Source: Chlorokybus atmophyticus
Taxonomy: Eukaryota; Plantae; Mesostigma and Chlorokybus algae
NCBI GenBank assembly: GCA_009103225.1
Contig: RHPI01001699.1
Location: 1 to 14,251, forward strand
Length of the DNA: 14,251 bases
Reading direction: 5' to 3'
In this document: positions 1-14,251 of the stretch, in pieces
How the letters are laid out: each line of letters begins with the position of its first letter
Position numbering within the stretch: the first letter of the stretch is position 1
Notes under the pieces: generated by a model
Told to the model about the DNA's origin: nothing
The model's database searches: none
What the model saw: the letters and a program-made list of their open reading frames with translations, nothing else
Program-made: the position numbers and the translations under genes

Positions 1-4
1 TCAC

Positions 5-206
5 TGGCTCCGTCGTACCATTATAATGGTACGATCGAGCCATTGAACGTCCAGGGTGAGTCTGGATATATATATATATACATATGTATTATGATTGAAC
101 CGTTTCAATGGTACGAAGATGCCTTTGCCCCAAGGTATAGGCATTATACAAAGGTACCATTGAAATGGTACCTTTGTACAATGGCAATGGCAGTTCGTAC
201 CATTGA
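5..206. repeat. Array of inverted GTACCATT/AATGGTAC motifs and palindromes; candidate subterminal region of a CACTA-type element (CACTG at 2-6)
   Basis: Perfect 22-bp palindrome TCGTACCATTATAATGGTACGA at 13-34, extended by TGGCTC/GAGCCA (5-10/37-42). Hairpin with 15-bp arms at 147-161/164-178 (TACAAAGGTACCATT-GA-AATGGTACCTTTGTA). 12-bp inverted pair TCAATGGTACGA (105-116) and TCGTACCATTGA (195-206). The repeats are directly seen; the transposon-end interpretation is inference. Confidence 0.8.
66..80. repeat. (AT)n microsatellite
   Basis: ATATATATATATATA at 66-80. Confidence 0.9.
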
Positions 207-285
207 CAACTCTGGCAATGTCAGTCCCCCTGCGCATGAAAACACCATTGATAGCTCCGCCAAGCTATGCCCTTACAGGGGCGTG

Positions 286-1220
286 ATGCCGAGGGTATGT
301 GGCGTTTGGAAGATCGTTGGCGGCGCTGCCAGGGGCGTAGTGGGCATTGTGGTCGAGGTCCGGGATGAATTCCATGTTCGCACAGGGCGGGCAGGGTGCC
401 GGAGGGGTGTCCTCGGTGTCAAACCCCACCAAGACTACCAAGGGCACATCCAATGACAACAGTGACTCGGGCGATATCTTACAGGGCTCCCCATCCGAGT
501 GGGCAAAGGCACACCACAATACTGCCTCTAAGAAAATCCGACCCACCAGCAGCTGCGACCACGGCGACATGATTGAAGGGACCAAACAAGACTGGCATAA
601 CCAAGGTGGGTTACGATGCACTGTCAATGCCACATGCTAGGGTTCTTTTATCTTGCACATGCACAGCCTCAAGTATCTTGCACTTGACATACATTGTCAA
701 TACGACATGCACACCCTCATGCACAACCTCCAGTGTCATGCACATGAACAGCATGACCAATCTCGCAAATGCACAGCCTATTTCTACTTGCGGGAGCTCA
801 CAAGTCGCAAAAGAGAAGCTGCGGAGTCAAACGAACGGGTAATCTATGACCTAGTTTAATGTTTCCAGCGGTAATTAAGCAGTATGCTTGCAGATTGCCA
901 TGTTGGTCAGAGTGAACCAAGAGCAGCGCGGCAGGCTGACTGTCTGCCTGGCGGAGTGCAACAAAGCGGAAGACGAGGTAAGCGTGTGTATGCTGATGGG
1001 CTAGTCCTCTGGCAGCACGCCACTCTTACAGCATTACCAAATGCAGGTGGTCACTCTCAAAGCGACCATCAAGCGCATGCGCGTGCACGGCGAGGCGCTG
1101 ACATTCAAGCTGAAGGACGAAGTAGCCGCTGTACTGTCAGCGAGCGAGGCAGCGGATGAAGATGACTCCGGCGTTGAAGCAGAAGACTCGTCGGAGGAGG
1201 AACAGGAGGAGGGGGTTTGA
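286..1220 (+). CDS. Small spliced gene of unknown function (about 187 aa): low-complexity N-terminus, helical/coiled-coil-like middle, acidic C-tail
   Basis: Exons 286-294, 386-605, 777-838, 894-977 and 1032-1220 join through GT..AG introns with compatible phases (0,1,0,0) into one open frame: ...DWHNQAYFYLRELTSRKREAAESNERIAMLVRVNQEQRGRLTVCLAECNKAEDEHYQMQVVTLKATIKRMRVHGEALTFKLKDEVAAVLSASEAADEDDSGVEAEDSSEEEQEEGV*. The 5' end is uncertain (alternative ATG at 365). Confidence 0.6.
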
Positions 1221-1442
1221 GGAGGAGTTCTTAGGCAGGCACCACGGGTTGACAAGCTGCGCATGAGTCCGACAGCTAGACTCAATGTTATAGGATAGTT
1301 TCATGCGCAAGTCGACTGCTCAGTTGTGAGTGGACATACTCTCACCACTGCCCGTACATTGTATATATTGTGGGCTTTTAGGTGCAAGACCAAACAATCA
1401 GTCCAAGGTTTGTACAAGCTGCATGGCATGTTAGTGTTGGCT

Positions 1443-1766
1443 TACGGCAAGAATTGCCAACTTTTGTCAAATGGCAAGGGTCACATATTAACAGCAGTGT
1501 AACGGCAAAGAAACTGCCGGCTATGGCTGTCAGCGGTCCGTAACTACCGGTTAACGGCCGTCTGTGCACATCGACCAAAGGGTAACTGGTTGACAACTCT
1601 CGGCCGGTTAGTGCCACTGACAACCACTTTCGGCCCGCGGCCGTCTGCGTCAGTCCATTTAAGCCAACGGCAAACCCAACAGTCCAAAAGTAATATTTCA
1701 GGCAGCAACAGGCAGGCTCAGGCAGGCTCAGGCACCAGTCAGTCCCTCAGTCCTTAGTCAGTCACC
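1443..1766. repeat. Cluster of short AACGGC(A)/GCCGT motifs, then a 10-bp tandem and CAGTC repeats, upstream of element A transposase; possible subterminal/promoter region
   Basis: (A/T)ACGGC at 1443, 1501, 1553 and 1666; CGGCCGTCTG at 1556 and 1638; TGACAAC at 1591 and 1618; GGCAGGCTCA x2 at 1711-1730; CAGTC repeats at 1736-1766. Confidence 0.45.
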
Positions 1767-1861
1767 GTGTAAAATTTGCGACGAATGACCATTGGTCTAC
1801 ACACACTTTGTTTGCCCTTTACACTCTGGTTACCGCTGAGCTGCTCTGCTGGTAATTTTCC

Positions 1862-4800
1862 AAGTGTGGCTGTTGCTGGTGCAATTACTAATAACAGTGG
1901 AGTGTGTGCCTTTGTGCAACTTGGAGATCCAGATGTTGCACTCACCATGACATTGTGGAAGAGGCACAGCAACGTATTGGTCGCCAACACCCAGCGAGGG
2001 AAGTAAGGAGCCTGATGCAGACCCTGATGCAGCAGTGCCCAGAAAAAACAACCATAAAGTTAAAGCTGAACCAGGTCTTCCATCAAGGTCCAAGTCCTTC
2101 GATACCATGGAGGATGCAGCAGTCCATACCGAACAGGCCAGGGAGATGTTTGCTGGTCTTTTGAGAGACGAAGAAGTGCATATGGCCGCAATCAGAGATG
2201 TGCTATCAAATTTGCGTGAACACCAATTGATTATTGGGTTGCGCACAACTACATTGGGCTTCGTGCTCAGCTTGCTTGCCCTTGCAGAACGCCACAATGC
2301 ACCGTTTGCCTTGGTCAACAGCCTATTCAGGTAACCTAGGCTATAGAACTTGCCTTGAGCAAATAGTCACCCTGTCAACTTGGCTGCAAAATGACATGCG
2401 TCCATGCAGATTCCTGCACGCTCATCCGCGACCCGAGAGTAACAACCTCCCAAAAAGCATTGATGGCGCACTGAACATGACTGTTTTTTGCATATGGGGT
2501 TCAAGTCATGTCATGCTTGCAGTTGTAACGGCACCGTCTACTATGGTCGCACCGCGCACTTGAGGCGCTGTCAAGGTACGTGATAGTTAAATCATTCAGG
2601 TCTCTGCACTCAGCTCATAGTGATTTGTGAACCCATAACACCGGTGTTGCATCAGTGTGCAAGGCCAAGCGATTCAAACTAAAAGCTGGCAAAAAGGTCC
2701 CATGGAAGTTGTACGCTATTTTTACATTGCGGAGGCGTTAAGAGCCATGTTTAAGAAGCCAAGCATTGCCAAATGCATGACTGCCCACATGACATCGCGA
2801 GGAGCAGATGATGACCCTGTTGTGCGATCTATCCACGGTACTGTTTAATTCAATTGAAAACCTTAGTGTGTGAACGTTTTGCTAACTGTATGACCATTTG
2901 CGGATTCAAAGAGGTTCAAGGAGACAGAGCGGCAGTATCCACAGTTCAAAGATGAACCAAGACAATTACGGCTAGCTCTCTTTCTTGACGGATTAAGCCC
3001 CTTCAAAGACCCGCACAAAGGTGGCTAGGTGCATAACCACCAAGTTTTTCTTCTTCAGTATAGCTGAATGTCGTTAAGGAATTGCTTCTGATGTACGCAG
3101 GAAACTATGAGCTGTGGTTGGTTGCAGTGTCAATCCTCAACCCGCCCGTGGACATCATGAACAAGTCTGATGCAACGTTTTTTGGCTGCTGTCATACCTG
3201 GACCCAAGCAGCCGGCAACCCTACAACCGTATCTTGAACCGATTGTTGACCAACTGCTGGAGTTGTGGTATGGTATGTGTTTGTTTTGTGGGGGTGGGGG
3301 GATTTGAATGTATGCCTTCCTTATGTAGGAATAAATATGTACGATGCACACAAGAAAGAGTACTTCACGTGCAAGGTCATTCTAAAAATTGTGGTTCACG
3401 ACTATCCAGGTGTGTACAATCATTAGCACTTGCTGCTATAGCAATTTAACATGTCTTGACCTCTCTTGACCCTTAGTACTGCTCTGCAGCACTGTTAAAG
3501 GCCGCCATGCAGATGCCTGATGGCTCAAGGAGCGGGTGCGCCAAATTCGTTATTCGTGGAGTGTACGTACCTAAGCTGAATAAAGTGATCTACGACAACT
3601 ATCGACATTGGTTGCCCCCCGATCATCCTTATCAAACTGATGAGCGCTTTGGTGAACCGGAAACGCGACTACCTCCAGTACAACAAACTGCAGAGTCTGT
3701 GCTCAGGTGGGTAACTCAGCGTCGCCTACGCGCGAGTCGTCCTTGTCCTTGAGATGCTGTCGGCGTACTGTGTCATGCATTGCAGGCAGGGTACAGCAGC
3801 ACTGAAGTCCACACTGCCCCACAAGTCACCCAACCACCCATCAAAGGCATCGGGCATATTTGGCGTTAGCTGCTTCCACAAGCTGCCTTACTGGATGCCG
3901 TTGGCAAAACCTATAACCGGACATGTCATTGGGCCCATGCATATTTGTGCAAATCTGGCCACCGATTTTGCAAAGCTCTTATCCGGTGACGGGAGTCGTG
4001 ACAACATCAGCGCACCCCGTGATCTTGAAAAGCAGGGCAGGATGCCTGAGCTATGGCCCAAGGTATGATGCATTATCATGATGATACATGCTATGCAGCA
4101 GAGCGCATACGGGATGTGTCATGTCCTTGTAGTTGATGCTAACAACATCGCATGTAGACGAAGGTTGTTCACAAGGACGATAAGGAGGTTGAGGTCACAA
4201 AACTGCCAGAGCACCATAAGTGATCGACACAGATGATCTGGATGAGTTGATAGACGCGGTGAAGGTTCCGAACAGTTTTGGAGCAAAGCTACGGTCATTC
4301 TCCAAAAATCTAGGTGAGTTGACAGCATAGGTTGTGCTTGTCTGTTCCCACCAGCATTGCCACATGACACAACAGCTTGCATATTTTCTCGCAATGTGCA
4401 ACCATATGCAGGGTCTATGAAGTCCCACGACAAGCGCAACCTATGGTCTGTTGTCTTCCAGTATGTCTTGCGCCGTGCACAAGGGATAGGAGCTGAGCAA
4501 AAGGCCACCATAAACAAGCTTTGTGAAGTATCAACGACTCACGGCTTTGAAAGTTGAACAATCCCAACTGGAAGAATTGCGTGTGAGTATGTCAGCAACC
4601 ATGCCTTCAGGGTCTATGTGTTGCATCTTGGCGCATGCATAGTTGACATCATTTGTCAAAGCAGTTGATGGTGTGGGAGGTGCAGTGCGAGGTGGAGCTT
4701 CACGTCCCACGCACGTGTCTCACCAGCATGCTGCATTTATTGGGTCACTTGGCGGACCAATGCATGTGGTTGGGTCCTGTTTGAGACCACTAGGAGTGGG

Positions 4801-6284
4801 CTTACGTGAGGCTGATCAACTTTGTGAAAAAGAAGAGTTTGGCGCGCCAAGCCATTGAAGCCAGCACTTGCATGAGGTGAGTCACTAACATACCTACATG
4901 AATGACAAAATGCATGCTAACGTCTGCTTGTGAACAGGTATGCCATCCACACAATGGTTAACACGCGGATGGATTACCCGCAGACAGTGTTCCCAACTAT
5001 CACCTTGAGGTCAGGAAAGCAGCGGCAAGATGACGATTTTACTGACTGCCTGGTGCAAAGCGTATCGTGCGGTTCGGGGCCAAGAGCAAGTTGCGCCAGC
5101 AGCAGGAGCACGGGCTGGCGGAGAATGACAAGCAATTCAACAGGCTGAAAAGGTGAACTTGTGCATTTGCTTGCTAAAAGGAAGTGTCGAGTGAGTTAAA
5201 TATGCTGTGGATTTTTAGCTCACATATGAATGTTGCAGAGAATTTGAAGCTTGGAAGGCGAAGCAGCGATAGCAAAACAGCAAAGCCAAGAGGGCAGGCC
5301 AAGAAGCCAATGAGGAAAATCTCAACAATGACATTTGTAATGGAGGCCAAGTCGACCTCTGACCAATCATGAAGAGAGCCTTCTGAGACTGCCTAGCCAG
5401 CTGTTGCATTACAAGCGTGCCGTATACAAGGACATTGTCCAGTTTAGAGCAGGGAGTATGGAGTCACGCATGGAGACCATGGATTGTGGAGTCTCTACCA
5501 TTGGCTATGCTGAGTGTGCAAGCCCAGCAAAAGCAGTGACCTGGTACGGGCGCGTGCAGTCGTTTGATGTGGTATGCATCGCCGGTATTGAGCATCAGTT
5601 GGTGAGAGCCAAGTAGTACAACCCTGCGGCTGTCAAGTTTCGTGACGGCTTCCCTTTGGTGGATCGGCGGAAAATAGAAGCCGTTTTACACAAAGTCAAC
5701 TTACATCTCGTGTGATCAGGTGGGATGTGTGTGAAGCAAATTGCACAGTGCCTTATTATTCTCAATCACTTAAATGTGCAACACATGGCCAGGTTCGTGG
5801 GCAGTGGCTTGAAGGCATATATGTAAAAATTAAACACGTCATTGTTGTGTTGACCAAAGACCACCAAAGTATCATGCGCAGGGGGATCAAGCGCCCTCGC
5901 TCGTCGGTAAGCACATGCTGCACACGCACTGCGGCTTTATTGACACAGGATAACACAATCATGCCGGTCTGGTAGGGACCTGGAGAGTGTAGCGGGCAAA
6001 GCAATCGGTCGTGGTCCACGCTCCGCGCATGGCATTGGGAGAACAAAAGTTGTCCTCCTTGTTGTGCTGTGCTGTGCAACAACCTCTACCACACACACAC
6101 TTTACGTGCTTTGGTAGGGCGCAAGCTGACTTTGAAGCTGAAGCTGTCTTCAAGGATGAAGCTGAAGACTACTGCTTTGTTTGCAAAGATGGTGGTAATG
6201 TTGTCTGCTAACGACAAGCAGGGTTGCCTCAAGAGCTACCACCCCCGCTGCTTGGAGAAACCACTGCCAAACGAGGAGGCACCG
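1862..6284 (+). pseudogene. Element A: degraded CACTA/EnSpm Tnp2-type transposase gene with C-terminal PHD finger (truncated)
   Basis: Exons homologous to element B: ...-2330, 2410-2575, 2656-2837, 2904-3020 (LRLALFLDGLSPFKD), 3101-3272 (IPGPKQP..YLEPIVDQLLELW), 3329-3409 (VVHDYP), 3490-3706 (YRHWLPPDHPY), 3786-4062, 4158-4313, 4412-4582 (MKSHDKRNLW), 4665-4876 (LHLLGHL..LGP), 4938-5152, 5239-5719 (WYGRVQSF), 5793-5906, 5949-6049, 6118-. Lesions: stops at 4217, 4782, 4791, 5270, 5614 and 5973; frameshifts near 2484-2489, 2708, 3178-3183, 4199-4202 and 4528; acceptor AG>GG at 2902-2903; catalytic E>V at 4806-4808. Confidence 0.92.
6118..6284 (+). pseudogene. PHD-finger exon of element A, frameshifted and truncated before the final W-x-C-P-x-H
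   Basis: EDYCFVCKDGGNVVC / DKQGCLKSYHPRCL aligns with element B EDYCFVCKDGGTISGCDVEGCWKSYHAHCV. There is a frameshift near 6209-6215, and homology stops after ..PNEE at about 6280. Confidence 0.85.
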
Positions 6285-6309
6285 GTAATTATGAGACCCC
6301 CGAATTTTT

Positions 6310-6865
6310 GAAAATTCATGGCAAACGCACTGAATATTCGTTGGATTTACCGTTTTAGCTTTTTATCGAGTGAATATTCAAGTGTTTTCGTACATTTTGT
6401 GCAATCCCTGCCAAAACGAAATCGCGACATTCACCTATAAATCGCGTGAATATCCACACGATAAACCAATGCCACCTTTCAAAACCCATATACCTCGTAT
6501 ATTCAGTTGAAATCGATTGAATGTTCAAGGCATGCAATTGTGAATGGACACAGCATGTGCTCTGCTAAATATTCAGCTATACATTGCCTGAACATTCATG
6601 AAGGGGCATAAGCTTCTGGCTATAACAGACAGCTTAAACTCACCAAGTCCCAACTGCCCGTGAATAATCAATTGATCAGCTTGTCACACATGTATATTCA
6701 TAACCTTCATCAGTTTCATGCCACAGATGTGAGTGAACATTCAACACCAATCTGAAACTACGCAATACGATTCACACTAAGTCCTAGCTTTGAGTGAATT
6801 TTCAACACCATTCCAAAACCAAGCAATACGTTTTGCACTAACTCCTAGCTGTGAGTGAATATTCA
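6310..6865. repeat. Array of about 12 variant GAATATTC palindromic motifs in an AT-rich block; candidate subterminal region of element B or of another inserted element
   Basis: Perfect TGAATATTCA at 6371-6380 and 6856-6865. Exact or variant octamers at 6310, 6332, 6448, 6497, 6519, 6567, 6590, 6662, 6692, 6735 and 6796. Confidence 0.7.
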
Positions 6866-6870
6866 ACCCC
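6730..6870. repeat. Degenerate 61-bp tandem repeat (2 full units plus a partial third)
   Basis: GAGTGAA..TTCAAC starts at 6731, 6792 and 6853 (period 61). Units share GCAATACG and CACTAA.TCCTAGCT. Confidence 0.85.
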
Positions 6871-7076
6871 ACACGAATAAACATATACTCTCATTTTGGC
6901 CAAGTCTCGAATGTGATTGAAAACCAAGTAGATTGCACTGCTAATTCTAATATACAGCCTAGTATATGTCACAGCCAGAGTTGCTCAGCAACTCTACACA
7001 GCTGGTTTGAGTTGATGGTGGGGGACAGCTCTGATATGGACTACAGCATTGCTATGCTACACACCACCTGCTACTA

Positions 7077-8340
7077 CTAGCTCAACTCACGTCTTTGCTG
7101 TGCTAACATACTGTCCATGAGTGTTCGCAATCGTCTTCTCAACCTGTCTGCCACTTGAGGATGAAACCAACTCCTTTGCATCTGCACACAACCACACAGC
7201 AATAACATGTGGTTACTAAGCACGTGTCGGCCTACACGACAGTGCCATTGAAGCACCTTCCACTTGTAAACATTGCAGTGCACATGCATGAACTGTACCT
7301 GTTGAAATATCCGTGCGTTTGGGTCAATTGGACCAGCTTGTACCCCATCTATAAACTTGTCAAGATAAAGCATGACAAACAACCCGCACGCAACTCCATC
7401 CTTCTGCTGAGGGACCTGCACAAACATGTGTCAATGCTTGCAAACCAAATGCATGTGCATGCATCCAATCAGTGCTTGTGACAGAATGCATGCAAACTCA
7501 TCACTAGTGCAATGCAACGTGTGCTACCTGTGGTACAAGAAGCTGTACGTTTTCGGGAGAGAAGCGTCGTTGTGAGTCACTTCCATGCTTTCTGCCCCAC
7601 ATGTAGTCAAGGTAAGCGCGCATAGGTCCATCAACGTTGCGATGCAGGCCAAGGGAGTCGAGATGGACGAGTAAAGGCGGCGTGTCACTTCCAAGTTGGC
7701 CTCCAGGATTGCACACAAGCAGCAGACTCCAGTGAGTCCTGTGAACAATCAAAATAATTCCAGTTTGCAAATACAGCAGCAATTCAGCAAGATATTCTTG
7801 GCGCTTATTCTCACCGCGTGTCTGGGTTGACAATCACTCCCAGCAAGTCCTTGGCAAACGGATCACTCTCCCACCTGTCTATCCTGTGATTGCTCGTGTG
7901 CCAGTCATTTTGTCTATGGCAGCGCACGATCTTGGTGTAGAAATGCGGGTGGAACAGCTTCACCTGAATGCCATCTGCTCTGCCTAAGATTTCCTCTTCC
8001 TTGTATCTGCATGTGCATCCCACGTACATATGAGATACACGAATAACACAGACGCAACAAATCACATACCTGCAAAAGAAGTGGAGGATGGTGTCATTGA
8101 GCTCTTGTCTGCCATCCAGCAACCTCCTGTCCGTTTCAAGCACTGGCACCGCATCACGTGCACTTGCACTAGGGTAAATGAACAGTGGCTGCGGTGTTGA
8201 CGGCTGCGGGTTGCTGACTGGATCGTCCAGCACCATGATATCATCATCGCTGCCCACGAGGTCCACAACTGCCGCAGCCGTCGTGGGTTGCTGATTACAG
8301 CCCTCTTCGTCTTCATCGTCAACTTCCATCGTGACTGCCT
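7077..8340 (-). CDS. Ulp1/SENP-type SUMO-like protease domain (peptidase C48); exons 20-24
   Basis: FIYP..DAVPV..D...L....ELNDTILHFFCRY, KLFHPHFYTKI, RW..DPFAKD, IVNPDTRTHWSLLLVCNPG (His 7732-7734), HLDSL (Asp 7657-7659), VPQQKDGVACGLFV (Cys 7386-7388), SWF..VADRLRRRL. The triad and oxyanion Gln are intact. Confidence 0.92.
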
Positions 8341-11300
8341 CTGCAGCCATAAATGGTTCAATTGGGCAAGAACCACAACGCAAATCAACAAGCTCAAGCA
8401 CACAGCAGCTTACCATTGTTAGCCTCATCCCCACTCTCTTCAACGTGTTGAACCCCACTCTGCACAGGTTGTGAAACCCTACCGCAACTGCCCGGCAGAG
8501 AACGACGAGCAAGGCTCTCCCTTGGGAGCTGCGCTGGAGCACCACCTTCTTCGTACGCAGCGCATCGCGAGCACGTAACCTCAACCATGCTACCCACAGC
8601 GTGCCGTCGACAGAGGCTGTTTGGACACGTCGCGCAGACTTGAAAAGCTGCTTCGTTGCAGTTCTTCACATGGCACCTGTGTTTTGGTTCAGTACAAGTG
8701 ATGATGGTTCTAGAAGTGAAGTTCCTCACAACAAGATGCCGAGCATTTGCTGCAATGAAGTCCACTTACTCATGCCTTGGGCACTCCCAATATTCATCCT
8801 CCACAGGTGGCATAGAGACACAGTGCGCGTGGTAGCTTTTCCAGCAACCTTCCACATCGCAGCCAGATATGGTGCCCCCATCCTTGCAGACAAAGCAGTA
8901 GTCTTCATGTTCCCGATGTTCCAACGCATCCAGCTCCAGTCTCGGTCTCATCCTGTGAACAAAGGTTCAGTGGCCAGGTCTACAGTCTCACAGTAGGGAT
9001 ATGAGGCATCACAATCGCAAACAGTACCTCTTGTACTCAAAATGCCAGTCGCGGCGTGTGGTCCATGACACCTCGCTCGAGGCGCTATTGGTTTCGCTTT
9101 GGGCACCCTGCACCAAGTACACAAGATGGTTGTATGTGATGCCAAAACCCAGGATATATGAGGACATCCAGATTCTAATGGACAACGTTGTTAACTCTCC
9201 TCTTACCGGAGTGTCCCGGTGCATGCCTCGACGCATGAGACTGCGCCTGTCTTTAACAAGCGCTACAATTACTTTGTTGTCATGGGGATCAATTCCCTCA
9301 AACCACTGGCCCTTGACCTGCCAGCAAGAAGGGATATTCATCAGCCATTTTCATACTACTATTTCAATTTACTATCATCACACCAAGCACACGCCAAAAC
9401 GATTGCAACACAGCCACTTACCAGGTTGCAATCAAGGTAGGTTTGTTCTGCAAAGCGGGGCTTGTCTTTTCTTAGGATTGCAAATCCTCCACTGTGCTGG
9501 ACTTGGTTGCTCATGTACCACCTAGCTCTGAGCAGCTGGTGCTCCCGACCAGCTATCACCACAACATCAAAAGATTGCACCCTGCCATACCAATGGATCT
9601 TCTTGGTTGGGTCATCTGAGTCACGCCCAACGGTAAACACGCCACAGTCCATGGTGCGGAGTTTCTTCTCCATTTCCTCTGCTCTGAACTGACCGATGTC
9701 CTTGTAGCGTGCTCTGAAGTATCGCTTGATGTACTTTGGAAAGATTGGACCGCTCAACAGCTCCATCTCGTGCTTTGTAAGCTCCCTAGCAGGTCCACGC
9801 CAGTGATGCAGCTCAGTCATATGCTCCATGTCCTTTGCCACGACATGTCCTTGTTTTTGAGCCCTTTCCCTTGCCATCCTGCGTTTGTTCACCTCCCGAC
9901 TGAACTCTCTGTGTAGCAGCAACCCATAAATAAATCATACTGTCTGCGCGTTGGACATCACGTACAAAACAGCAACTCCCAAAGCAACTTACTCTTTTAA
10001 CAGCCTGTATTCATCGTCATTCTCAGCCAACCACCACTCGAGCTCCTGCCTTGTCTTACTATCTTTATCCCCAACCTCAATACGGTGTCTCCGTCCGCAG
10101 AGCACATAGTCGTCATCATCTCGTTGCTTGCCCGATCGCAAACTGATGTCGGAGAAAAGTCGCTTCAAGGTGTCCATGTAAGTGTTCAGCATGAGCTGGA
10201 TAGAGTATCTGCAGATGCAACTGGCACTTAACAAGGCAAACAATGTGGAAAGTTTGCACGTAACTCTCAGTGGGCTCACACAAAACTTGCCTTTTGCAGA
10301 TGCTTGCTTCCACATGCTGCCTTGCAAATATCATGCGCTTCACCCACTGCATAAAGCGTTCATGTGCCCACTCCCAGTGGTCACGCGTCGGACCAAGCCA
10401 CATGCACTGCTCTGGTAGATGGCCAAGGAGGTGCAGCATCATTGTGAGAGAAGTTCGCGGGAAGAACAGCTCCACTTCAGACTGTGCCTCATGCACCAGC
10501 ACCTGCACTAAGTAATAAGCTACGCATGCCATAGGAGCTGGGCATGCAGAGTAAAGTGTTATTAAAGCCAACCTTCAATTCTTCGAGGTGTGACTGCTTT
10601 ACTTCCAATGCAGTCAGCCGTTGATAGATGTCGCATAGTTTGAAGATGGTTCTCTTCTGATCTTCTCCAATGTCGTGTGCAGAGCGCAGCACGTACTGAA
10701 AAACGACCGACCATAAGTTGTGCTTGTCGTGCGATTTCATCGAGCCTGCATGCTCCATGTCAAAAGTTGTCCATGCATGGAGAATCATTGCTTTAGCGTA
10801 AACACAAAACATATAACGGCTATCTCACCTAAATGCTTTGTGAAAGACTGCAGTTTCGAGCCGAAAGTGCTTGAAACCCTCACGCCGGAGAGCAATTGCT
10901 CAACCAGTCCTACATCTGTGATTGTCCATGGAGCCTGGGGTTTTACCTTGACTGCGACTTCCTTTCCATCCTTCATCTTCATCTCTGTCTGCAGCACATA
11001 GGTTCAAGTCCTTGGTTAAATCCAACTATGGCACATGTCAACGAGGCCGACTACATACGTACCTCTAGCCAGAGTTCAGGCATGCGGCCTTGCTGCTGCA
11101 GATCTTCTCGTGATTCGATGCTGTCGCGCAAGCCAGCTAGGAGATTTGCAAAGTTGGTTGCCAGGTTGGCAAAAATGTGCATAGGGCCAACCACATGACC
11201 TTTGACAGATTTTTGTAACGGTAGCCAATATGGAAGGTCGTGAAAACAGCTCAGTCCAAGGATGCCGGAGGTCTTTGAAGGATGTCTCTTGGAGTGCAGT

Positions 11301-14153
11301 GGACGCTTGCTGTTGCGAGATGTCATAGCATACCTGATCACATGGCATCCATTGCTGACATACCTATGTTCTGCAACCGAATGCGCAATCAACTGAGATT
11401 GCTCACCTGTACACGCTCTCTGCAGTCCGCATGGGTGGTGGAGGTCTGTGTTCTGGTTGCGGCCAACGCTCATCAACTCTGTAAGGATGGTCATCCGGTA
11501 GGTACCGGCGGTGGCCTTGATAGATCACCTTTTTGAGAAGTTCCACATGTTCTCCACTGCACTCGCACTTTGAACAGCCAAAGATGGCTCCATGCGCCAT
11601 CTGCAAGGCAGCTTTTGCCAGAGCTGCGCAACCAACATGATGTACTTCAGTAGCCACAACCATGGTTGTAAGGACAGTCCAATATACAGATACAGTCAGA
11701 CACTGATAACAGTAAGTGCAAACACTGCTGCTGCTTGAGTACCTGGGTAATCATGGATTACAATCTCCAGAATAGATCTGCAACGAAAAACTGCGTCGCG
11801 GTGGCTGTCATATATGTCTATACCTACAACAAATGCCAGCAGATTACATGCCTCAGTCATGCGCATTTGTCAGGCATGACTGCAGTAATGGAAGCTGCTT
11901 ATCCTAGCTGCGTTGAAACCATACCTTCCCAGAGATCTCCCAACTGGTCAATAATTGGCTTGAGATAAGCCTGTAGATTCTCTGGTTGTTTGGGTCCAGG
12001 GATAACAGCAGCTAGAAATGTAGTGTCTGTCTTGTGCATCTTGGCAATGGGCAGGTTCAACACTGAGATTGTGACAACCCAAAACTCATAGTTCCCTGCA
12101 ACTCAACAAACCCTTTGCTGCCATTCGTACAGTTACACTGCAACGAGCATACAGGAAGAAAAATGCTCTTTTATACCTTTGTGCGGATCTTTGAACGGGC
12201 TCATCCCGTCGATGAACATCGCTAGGCGCACATTGCGTGGTTCTTTGGCAAACCGGCTGTAGCGTTGTTCAGTGTCCTTGAACATTGGCGAGTCTGACAG
12301 CAGCAAGTACACCAAGGGCTTACGACCAACTGCCCCAGCCCCACAACACATTCAAACATGCATACAATCGCAAGGCTGGATACTGAGGTCTTACATACCG
12401 CCCCAGCACCTCGCCGACACACAAACAAACACAGGCAAGGACACCGAGGTCTTACATGCCGCCTCAGCGCCACGCCGACACACAAACAAACACAGGCAAG
12501 GACACCGAGGTCTTACATGCCGCCTCAGCGCCACGCCGACACACAAACAAACACAGGCAAGGACACCGAGGTCTTACATGCCGCCTCAGCGCCACGCACA
12601 CAAAAGCACAAGGCACGGACACTGAGGGCTTGCATTGGACTGCCCCAGCCGCTCACCAACACAATCATGCACACAGTCGTGCCTCATTTACCACTGAACT
12701 TGGCAATGTTACCGTGTATAGATCGCATAATCCCATCCTGACTTCGATTTGTGTGCGCCATCATCTCCGCAGCAACACTAGGTTTTAGGTACAGAGCCCT
12801 CAGCGCAGCAGGCACGTCAAAGTAACGCCCAATCTTCCATGCAACTTGTCTACCTCCTATGTGCGGTAGCGAGGGGCCTTGCAGACTGCATAAGCAAGTC
12901 GTATGCTGATGGGACATGCTAATCAAATCCCATTGTAGTGAACATTTGCAACAATTGCTCACCTTTGCAAAGTATCCTGTTGGCATGTCGGCCACAATAC
13001 AACATGTGATCACAGCGACAGGCATCATATGTGTGGAAGCCCATGTTGAGGCCTTCAAGGCATTTCAATAGCTCGTGCATGCTGCCTGGCATCTTATTCT
13101 CCTTAGGCAAGAGGATGCCACGCAACAACCTGGCACACAGAAACACATCAGTTCTGAACAGGCTGATGTTTCAGCAGTCAGCAGTGTAATTTGCCCACCA
13201 ACCTGAGCAGTTTATTCATGAAATTGAAGGGTATTCGATGTAGCTGCGCCAGAACCAATAGCAGCATGGAAATGCCTAGAGGGGTTGTACGAGAGCCGAA
13301 AACAACAGGGTTGCTTGCATTATCCAGCAACGCAGCATTCACCTTGTCAAGTAGCATGGCATCATCAACGCATTTAGCCTCTGGCTGCGATTCCACATCG
13401 GTTTCATAGTCTTGGTCTTCGCCGGCAACATCACCTTGCTCCGCATCACCTTGCTCCGCATTGACTTGCTCAGCAGTGGAGGTGCAGTGCACTGGCGTCT
13501 CAGGCTCCACTTGTCCATTTGTGAATTTGGTTCTGGCACCTTGATGCTCTTGCAATGTAGCATTCTCAATTCCATAAAATGCTGGGTGAGATCCGCGTTG
13601 TTCTCCATAAGCACATTGTCCTTCATGAGCACACGGATTACAACTTGCCAGCTGCCATGAGTCTAGTGGCACATGAACAATGAGAGGCACAGCATCCGCA
13701 ATGTTAACATGCCACGCAAGTCAGGTCGTACCTGCTGGTTGCAAGTTGGCTGCAACATTGAAAGGAGATTCAACACTCGGTTGCAACGGCGTGCCTGTGT
13801 CAACATGTTCAGTAGCGTCGTTCCCAACTAGCAATTGTTCGGTGTCATGGAGAGCTTCACCTGGGGCAAGCCAGATCAATGATCAGACAGCCTGTTGTAT
13901 AGATTCACAGCTGTAGAGAAGTTGCTCTCGTACCTGACGACATGTGTAAGGATGCAGCAGCAACAGCAGCATCAGCTTCTTCAAGTTCATGGGGTTGTAG
14001 TCGATCACGGTATTCAGGAGCAACAGCTTCTGGAGTGCCACACCACATGTTTTTGCCAAAGTTTTCATGATATTCAGCCCTTCTAATGTGGTTGTGTGTG
14101 AACACTTTGCTCCCTTTGCAGTCGCAGCAAAAACACTTGCGAAAGTAGCTCAT
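7077..14153 (-). CDS. 24-exon fusion gene: CACTA Tnp2-type transposase + PHD-C5HCH + SIM-like linker + Ulp1/SENP (C48) protease, about 1595 aa, with one -1 frameshift near 12864
   Basis: Exons (minus): 14153-13934, 13860-13732, 13662-13203, 13129-12963, 12885-12713, 12293-12177, 12095-11925, 11823-11743, 11623-11407, 11333-11063, 10988-10829, 10745-10573, 10502-10291, 10208-9993, 9908-9422, 9317-9207, 9107-9028, 8952-8770, 8676-8414, 8340-8070, 8006-7815, 7738-7528, 7415-7299, 7181-7077. All 23 junctions are phase-compatible (22 GT-AG, 1 GC-AG) and no in-frame stop was found. The sum is 4787 nt, one short of a multiple of three. A further intron (14230-14155) precedes the ATG, so the N-terminus could extend upstream. 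Confidence 0.82.
8414..8952 (-). CDS. PHD finger followed by C5HCH-like zinc module (NSD-family PHD5-C5HCH pattern); exons 18-19
   Basis: Spliced sequence EDYCFVCKDGGTISGCDVEGCWKSYHAHCVSMPPVEDEYWECPRHE|CHVKNCNEAAFQVCATCPNSLCRRH...CSRC. The pattern matches the recalled NSD C..C.DGG....C....C.K.YH..C........W.CP.H.C..C......C..CP...C..H. Confidence 0.88.
9207..13662 (-). CDS. Transposase portion: Tnp2/Transposase_21-like core with DUF4218- and DUF4216-like regions
   Basis: Motifs YDACRCDHMLY, RNVRLAMFIDGMSPF (D at 12208-12210), IPGPKQP..YLKPIIDQL..LW, IHDYPA (D at 11750-11752), GHRRYLPDDHPYR, MKSHDKH, LHLLGHLPEQ..LGP..WEWAHERF (E at 10359-10361), WYGRVQSF..LLRARWY. These correspond to recalled plant En/Spm TnpD motifs (TDGFNPF, NDFPA, GHRRFL, KSHDCH, WMYPFER, YYG). 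Confidence 0.95.
12314..12680. repeat. 61-bp minisatellite inside intron 5 of the element B gene
   Basis: Three identical units at 12412-12472, 12473-12533 and 12534-12594 (CGCCGACACACAAACAAACACAGGCAAGGACACCGAGGTCTTACATGCCGCCTCAGCGCCA), flanked by degenerate units near 12314, 12385 and 12625. Confidence 0.97.
13430..13474 (-). repeat. 15-bp in-frame coding tandem repeat (AEQVN-AEQGD-AEQGD)
   Basis: ATCACCTTGCTCCGC is exact at 13430-13444 and 13445-13459, with a degenerate third copy at 13460-13474. Confidence 0.9.
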
Positions 14154-14251
14154 GCTACAAACATCGAAAGCAGTCAGCCAACATACTGCAAGCAACTTCC
14201 AATCAACTTCCATACAGCCAAAGCAAAGACCTGCAGGCACGCTGCCGCCGC

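Follow-up and report, generated by a model that had tools for sequence, protein, structure and literature searches.

Two CACTA-type elements and a transposase-to-protease frame

The window, a stretch of 14,251 nt from contig RHPI01001699.1 of the alga Chlorokybus atmophyticus, contained two convergent, mutually diverged CACTA-type transposase genes: element A on the plus strand and element B on the minus strand. In element B, the exons of a transposase, of a PHD-C5HCH zinc-finger module and of an Ulp-type protease could be spliced into a single unbroken, intact frame that lies within one transposon. That transposase and protease share one uninterrupted open reading frame (ORF) is a statement about the DNA alone. 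Judging from this sequence, we lean toward the reading that element B is an autonomous CACTA/EnSpm transposon, still intact and amplified recently, the main product of which would be a fused protein with transposase, PHD-C5HCH, SUMO-interacting motif (SIM) and Ulp parts. The features of the element B gene are as follows.

7077 to 14153, minus strand: element B transposase-PHD-Ulp gene, 24 exons with an open frame of 1,658 amino acids (aa), from the exon table and ORF continuity
11407 to 12329, minus strand: Transposase_21 (Tnp2) core, exons 6 to 9, from Pfam matches on exon pieces; 60% aa identity to element A
10282 to 10502, minus strand: DUF4218 domain, exon 13 (Pfam, 38.5 bits, E = 1.1e-9, cut-off 27)
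9028 to 9317, minus strand: link exons 16 (9317-9207) and 17 (9107-9028), between the C-terminal end of the transposase and the PHD exon
8770 to 8952, minus strand: PHD finger, exon 18, NSD PHD5-like (Pfam PHD_NSD, 29.5 bits; zf-HC5HC2H, 29.6 bits)
8414 to 8676, minus strand: exon 19, C5HCH zinc finger (to approximately 8601; Pfam C5HCH) followed by a low-complexity linker
8341 to 8413, minus strand: 73-nt intron (gtaagc...ctgcag) that decides between fusion and separate products, from reading of the sequence
8225 to 8269, minus strand: two SIM-like hydrophobic cores, VVDLV and IMVLD, in an acidic linker, from motif reading of the translation
7077 to 8188, minus strand: Ulp/SENP (Peptidase_C48) catalytic domain, exons 20 to 24, from profile and SENP7 alignment

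The gene model ran from ATG 14153 to the stop codon TAG at 7079-7077. All introns had GT-AG ends and the frame was open throughout, as had been claimed in an earlier note on this DNA (24 exons in compatible phases, with no stop before 7077). The three junctions named in that note were each an exact GT...AG intron (9207/9107, gtaaga..gtgcag; 9028/8952, gtactg..tcacag; 8414/8340, gtaagc..ctgcag). Donors were GTR in 20 of the 23 introns, acceptors were YAG in 21 of 23, and the median intron length was 74 nt. The start codon was uncertain, with a further in-frame ATG at 14213. The final model was guided by conservation between elements A and B and by domain frames; naive models built by dynamic programming on the longest ORF and codon usage kept open introns or took wrong frames and were discarded. 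Because 128 alternative combinations of boundaries stayed open in frame in the transposase part, only the last ten exons were uniquely defined, and two introns there, of 40 and 38 nt, remained doubtful. Two further introns on the minus strand, 9206-9108 (99 nt) and 8069-8007 (63 nt), were stop-free multiples of three, so that retention of either would keep the frame.

Domains were searched with Pfam profiles on exon pieces rather than on the whole spliced protein. Four exon pieces matched Transposase_21 with 29.5, 32.5, 16.4 and 29.2 bits and together covered profile positions 8-207 of 213; all but the third exceeded the cut-off of 28.6, as is expected of a Tnp2-type transposase. DUF4216, also assigned to this gene in the earlier note, was not recovered: neither exon 15 nor the longer ORF 9359-9922 gave a match at E ≤ 10, and the stretch WYGRVQSFDVVVIAG resembled DUF4216 by eye only. 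This domain is usual in ORF1 of seed plants and is not strictly defining for CACTA elements. An exhaustive HMMER search with the 187-aa transposase exon returned 0 matches among 1.84 billion representatives.

The NSD-type identity proposed in that note for the zinc fingers, and likewise the predicted SUMO-protease identity of the C-terminal part, found support in both profiles and solved structures. PHD_NSD exceeded its curated cut-off (29.5 vs. 23.9 bits), as did C5HCH, the latter at the borderline (26.5 vs. 26.3 bits; profile positions 5-34 of 50), and the two matches became contiguous once 8770 was spliced to 8676. Among solved structures, the PHD exon matched the PHD5-C5HCH module of NSD3 (4gnd) with E = 1.3e-10, and the longer NSD3 chains 7crr and 7crp were at the top; for the PHD exon alone, the PHD of CHD4 scored nearly as high as NSD3. 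The top three PDB matches of the C5HCH exon were the C5HCH modules of NSD3, NSD1 and NSD2, which were also its sole matches below E = 0.05. A word-index protein search with the C5HCH exon returned nothing. All zinc ligands of the PHD-C5HCH module were intact. Acceptor 8709 had been considered for the C5HCH exon and was dropped for 8676, which gives CPRHE|CHVKNC, matching CPWHQCDEC of NSD3, and raises the C5HCH score above the cut-off. A paralogue contig (described below) showed many indels with lengths other than multiples of three at 8684-8726, and this stretch is therefore taken as intron, in support of acceptor 8676.

Matches of Peptidase_C48 to single exons of the window were weak (15-17.6 bits), but on an annotated copy that was 94% identical to the element B model (P0002) the profile matched with 48.5 bits (E = 1.3e-12). 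The closest solved structure was SENP7 (3eay; E = 1e-4), and the alignment extended from PLFIYPS...LNDTILHFF to the catalytic Cys. THWSL, HLDSL and PQQKDGVACG aligned with SHWYL, ILDSL and PKQDNSSDCG of SENP7, which gave a complete catalytic set of His (7734-7732), Asp (7659-7657), Gln (7406-7404) and Cys (7388-7386). A length-limited search for protease relatives outside Chlorokybus found none at E ≤ 0.001. Ahead of the protease, VVDLV and IMVLD look like putative tandem SIMs. The NSD3 and SENP7 alignments ran smoothly over the predicted splice junctions.

Subterminal repeat arrays, a feature of CACTA/EnSpm elements, were present in both elements. Motifs of the GTGAATATTCAA type were found 13 times vs. 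1.2 expected, a number reached in 0 of 200 shuffles, and 12 of the 13 lay in a block beyond the 3′ end of the element B gene. Because this array lies 3′ of the stop codon, the protease is internal to element B. The motif AATGGTAC of element A occurred six times in 15-204 (0.37 expected). CACTG, a candidate terminus, stood at 6328-6332 for element B and at position 2 for element A, the opposite ends being outside the window. A scan of the window turned up no long inverted repeat, and in particular no terminal one spanning element B.

6308 to 6866, no strand assigned: element B 3′ subterminal repeat block with GTGAATATTCAA-type motifs, from motif counts against shuffles
2 to 6285, plus strand: element A, a decayed CACTA transposase-PHD gene used as comparator, from CACTG at 2 and tblastx to element B

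Conservation and copies of the element B exons

When elements A and B were compared by tblastx, every exon block showed 48-76% aa identity, with 48-56% in the link and PHD exons. At the DNA level, only four short stretches aligned and introns were unalignable. Synonymous sites were saturated, and codon position 3 held most of the differences. The ratio of non-synonymous to synonymous differences per site (pN/pS) was 0.35 in the transposase, 0.44 in link exons 16-17 and 0.45 in the PHD exon. Both elements agreed in where the three linking introns fall and in their phases. The two link exons, which have no domain of their own, were conserved in the frame that ties transposase to PHD in the A and B lineages: in the model frame their aa identity to element A was 56%, and that frame had codon-usage log-odds of +26.8, compared with -16.5 and -27.1 for the two alternative frames. 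Codon-usage log-odds also favored the model frame in the head of exon 20 and in the protease, and were uninformative for the Cys-rich fingers. By these comparisons, the link exons truly code for protein and have long been under purifying selection.

Element A itself was decayed. In-frame stops were observed near 4780 and 5610, the PHD part had a +1 frameshift near 6210, and the donor GT at 6049 had become TT. Because of this decay (in-frame stops and PHD frameshift), the A-B comparison records selection in past lineages. The match between the element A PHD exon and element B ended after ...NEEAP at approximately 6284, with gtaatt next. Since the match ends there and the candidate terminus CACTG of element B follows at 6328, element B may have been inserted into element A, possibly in an intron of the latter, in which case the remainder of element A would lie beyond 14251.

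A closer relative was obtained by placing contigs of the DNA run X1 at 80% likeness. This paralogue contig (1,733 nt, approximately 84% identity) was colinear over 7327-9050 and included link exon, PHD, C5HCH and four protease exons. Exons aligned, and introns were reported as diverged or of different length. Among the 40 of 276 differences that were listed, 34 were exonic; 21 of these 34 were synonymous, and 21 of 34 were at codon position 3. In the Ulp exons, the listed differences were 18 synonymous vs. 11 non-synonymous. The substitution patterns thus indicate that selection kept the transposase-to-PHD exons since before the split of A and B, and the PHD-to-protease exons among paralogues.

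In X1, the summed contig depth rose two- to three-fold at 9025-9105, 9268-9348 and 10267-10508, and contigs broke at these places, which suggests short segments that are near-identical in other copies.

Other copies were found in existing annotation. Eight gene models of JGI Chlat1 (EukProt EP00898), on eight scaffolds, matched the protease part of element B with 94-99% aa identity, and the B family is therefore multi-copy and young.

P0001 to P0008 (JGI Chlat1), on Chrsp69, 6, 33, 46, 178, 102, 112 and 14: fragments of B-family 3′ exons

In model P0003, acceptor 8340 was used to splice the protease exon onto the link and PHD exons. It started inside intron 9206-9108 and used an in-frame alternative donor in the PHD exon that skips C5HCH; a word-index search with this model returned only the same three proteins. 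The protease-only models dropped VQLLVPQ, a segment that aligns to SENP7. The donor at 7546 and the frame of the last exon in the JGI models were rejected on the basis of the SENP7 alignment, which favors 7528, and of the paralogue substitutions.

With copies this similar, intactness alone proves little, and fragments of ULP in plant transposons have been interpreted as transduplicates (PMC2528002). The PHD and Ulp exons could accordingly be captured host fragments with no function for the element, open only because the copies are young. We consider this very improbable. PHD and link exons had a pN/pS of approximately 0.45 between elements in which synonymous sites are saturated, the excess of synonymous over non-synonymous differences listed for the Ulp exons went along with introns diverged past alignment, and catalytic residues and zinc ligands were all intact.

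One polypeptide or several

Several observations weigh against a fused protein as the main product of element B. The DNA run X1 was genomic and colinear with the window, without splice joints, and gives no transcript support. When the intron 8413-8341 is retained, a stop is reached six codons on, at 8397-8395, and translation from the in-frame ATG at 8351 or the one at 8328 could yield a protein with the protease alone. In seven of the eight JGI models, the protein was indeed protease-only, with MEVDD or MMEVDD at the start (Met 8328). The linker flanking this intron (8286-8467) was unalignable in the 84% paralogue, and codon usage gave no signal either way in the last part of exon 19. Of dinucleotide shuffles made from the three linking intervals, 56-73% contained one or more frame-compatible, stop-free GT-AG introns, and phase compatibility alone is therefore not significant. 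Classical CACTA elements (En/Spm) make two proteins, TnpD and TnpA, by alternative splicing. The Peptidase_C48 of plant CACTA elements sits in ORF2, outside the transposase ORF (PMC8978399). In a 2021 run labeled as RNA and assigned to a differently coded organism (X2), approximately 15% of the sampled words of 8070-8676 were present; these words may represent a transcript fragment or a conserved part in a relative.

Under a stricter splice consensus, the same shuffles contained a frame-compatible intron in 10-26% of cases. A permissive dynamic-programming search readily made open chains through introns. In the C5HCH-to-Ulp interval, however, there were 108 solutions vs. a shuffle mean of 9.4, a number reached by 2 of 1,000 shuffles. 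The unusual feature is the openness of the real linking intervals, not the match of phases.

The main competing explanation is that alternative splicing yields separate proteins, as with TnpD and TnpA of En/Spm. The element would then make a transposase, with or without PHD-C5HCH, and an accessory PHD/SIM/Ulp protein in place of the ORF2 product of plant CACTA elements, with the full fusion as a minor product at most. We regard this as a possible, less probable arrangement. It agrees with the layout of plant CACTA elements, where ORF2 has Peptidase_C48 behind Transposase_24, likewise at the 3′ end (PMC8978399), and with atlas protein clusters that combine Peptidase_C48 and Transposase_24. A direct splice from exon 1 to exon 20 would keep the frame, since the end of the former and the start of the latter are both in phase 1; one in three exon pairs is, on the other hand, phase-compatible by chance. 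The in-frame alternative donor of P0003 within the PHD exon, which skips C5HCH, and the two introns that are stop-free multiples of three (9206-9108 and 8069-8007) are of the kind that alternative splicing could use. Against it stand link exons 16-17, which without a domain of their own were conserved in the transposase-to-PHD frame in both A and B.

The protease could also be a separate gene within the element, with an internal transcription start and Met 8328 or 8351 as initiator, while the transposase-PHD-C5HCH protein would end in intron 8413-8341. We judge this improbable. Seven JGI models on seven scaffolds do begin at Met 8328, and retention of the intron does lead to the stop at 8397-8395. 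The distance from this stop to the ATG is only approximately 45-70 nt, the splice sites of the intron conform well to the consensus, and a separate promoter for the protease has little room because the C5HCH and protease exons are 73 nt apart. The protease-only models mis-splice inside the protease. The 187-aa transposase exon, moreover, is in no annotated Chlorokybus model (0 matches among 1.84 billion representatives), which suggests that the transposase part was probably masked before gene prediction. Truncated JGI models would then be expected, and we give the protease-only models little weight. The fused protein remains the product toward which we lean, on account of the unbroken frame, the link exons conserved in it, the short C5HCH-to-protease intron, the colinear order in the diverged paralogue and the junction of P0003 at 8340.

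Two tandem repeats were observed in element B. One, with a unit of 61 nt (3.6 copies, 96% matches), lies at 12378-12597 on the minus strand inside intron 5, which because of it is the only long intron (383 nt). The other, also with a 61-nt unit and different in sequence (2.4 copies), lies in the 3′ subterminal block at 6728-6871.

Known systems and predicted function

The earlier note knew of no description of a fusion of these three parts. Fusions of transposase with Ulp1, with or without PHD, and of CACTA with Peptidase_C48 have in fact been published, and the part that appears to be new is the NSD-type PHD-C5HCH module and the algal host. Ginger1 transposases with a C-terminal Ulp1, and Ginger1-9_HM with Ulp1 and PHD, were reported in 2010 (Bao, Kapitonov and Jurka, PMC2836005), together with Mutator transposases with Ulp1 and PHD in Hydra and lancelet; a role of the protease in transposition was already proposed there (PMC2836005). 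These elements resemble element B in having a DDE transposase and Ulp1 in one ORF, with PHD in some families. They belong, however, to the integrase-like Ginger or the MuDR superfamily and not to CACTA, their genes have 0-4 introns vs. 23 in element B, and no C5HCH or NSD-type module is reported in that paper.

CACTA elements with ULP domains, including predicted proteins with Tnp2 and ULP1, were described from grapevine and rice in 2008 (PMC2528002), and architectures of the form Transposase_21...Transposase_24-Peptidase_C48 were described from many angiosperms in 2022 (PMC8978399). Such plant elements (grapevine Cactavine-2/3/4/5/13, Chenopodium Jozin and Vitis RVW26095.1) are of the same superfamily as element B, with Transposase_21 and DUF4218; RVW26095.1 comprises Transposase_21, DUF4218, DUF4216, Transposase_24 and Peptidase_C48. 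As in element B, Peptidase_C48 is at the 3′ end of the coding part and within the element (PMC2528002, PMC8978399). In the plant elements, the protease stands behind Transposase_24 (TnpA-like), whereas in element B it is the NSD-like PHD5-C5HCH and the SIM-like motifs that occupy this place. Element B differs further in that the entire gene is one uninterrupted spliced frame and that the host is an early-diverging streptophyte alga. The term "PHD" was absent from the CACTA papers PMC8978399 and PMC12973397, and the literature search found no paper tying Chlorokybus CACTA elements to a PHD or Ulp domain. What appears to be new is thus an NSD-type PHD5-C5HCH that replaces Transposase_24, a SIM-like linker, a single frame of 24 exons and an early-diverging streptophyte host.

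Outside transposons, the closest counterparts are the PHD5-C5HCH modules of NSD1, NSD2 and NSD3 (PDB 4gnd, 2naa and 9gbf), with which element B shares the spacing of Cys and His, including the CPxH-C junction between the fingers. The predicted element B protein has no SET, PWWP or other NSD domain. The protease resembles SENP6, SENP7 and yeast Ulp2 in its opening (PLFIYPS...LNDTILHFF vs. KLIVYPP...LNDVIIDFY) and in His, Asp, Gln and Cys, but is very divergent from them. SENP6 and SENP7 carry SIM-like motifs N-terminal of the catalytic domain, as element B does, and SENP7 is an editor of SUMO chains. The study of 4gnd (NSD3) reportedly found docking on the N-terminus of histone H3, and that of 2naa (NSD1) is said to have found binding of a partner zinc finger.

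The fully spliced mRNA of element B would encode one protein of approximately 1,658 aa. Its transposase core would cut and paste the element, and PHD5-C5HCH might dock the protein on the H3 N-terminus, by analogy with NSD3, or on a partner zinc finger, by analogy with NSD1. The SIM-like motifs could bring the protease to SUMO chains. Local removal of SUMO near the element or its target would then counter SUMO-dependent heterochromatin or repair factors, and might favor expression or transposition of the element or influence repair and the choice of target where transposition takes place. That PHD5-C5HCH, a SIM-like linker and a SENP7-like protease occur together suggests that the protein would be brought to silenced chromatin rich in SUMO; we infer functions in chromatin reading, deSUMOylation and counter-silencing from this combination. 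The complete proposal is that a single protein reads chromatin by its NSD-like PHD5-C5HCH, that its SIM-guided SUMO-chain protease removes SUMO from factors of silencing or repair, either where the element sits or at its target, and that this arrangement predates the split of the two CACTA families. In this full form, the proposal is speculative and rather unlikely to hold.

If it were true, element B would encode a chromatin-targeted anti-silencing enzyme that is physically coupled to the cut-and-paste machinery of a transposon, in an early streptophyte. In the annotation of Chlorokybus, the current gene models at B-family loci cover only fragments: all eight match the tail of the family's gene, seven as protease-only "genes" and one as a model that extends from PHD to protease. 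Proteases of the Ulp1 type are found repeatedly in transposons, among them Mutator, Ginger, hAT and CACTA. The B family is an unusually clean case, being intact and multi-copy, with a protease that is kept by selection and with a histone-reader-type module and SIM-like motifs upstream of it. This order of parts suggests a concrete mechanism, namely chromatin-targeted removal of SUMO, and the B family extends the association of transposons with such proteases to an early-diverging streptophyte alga.

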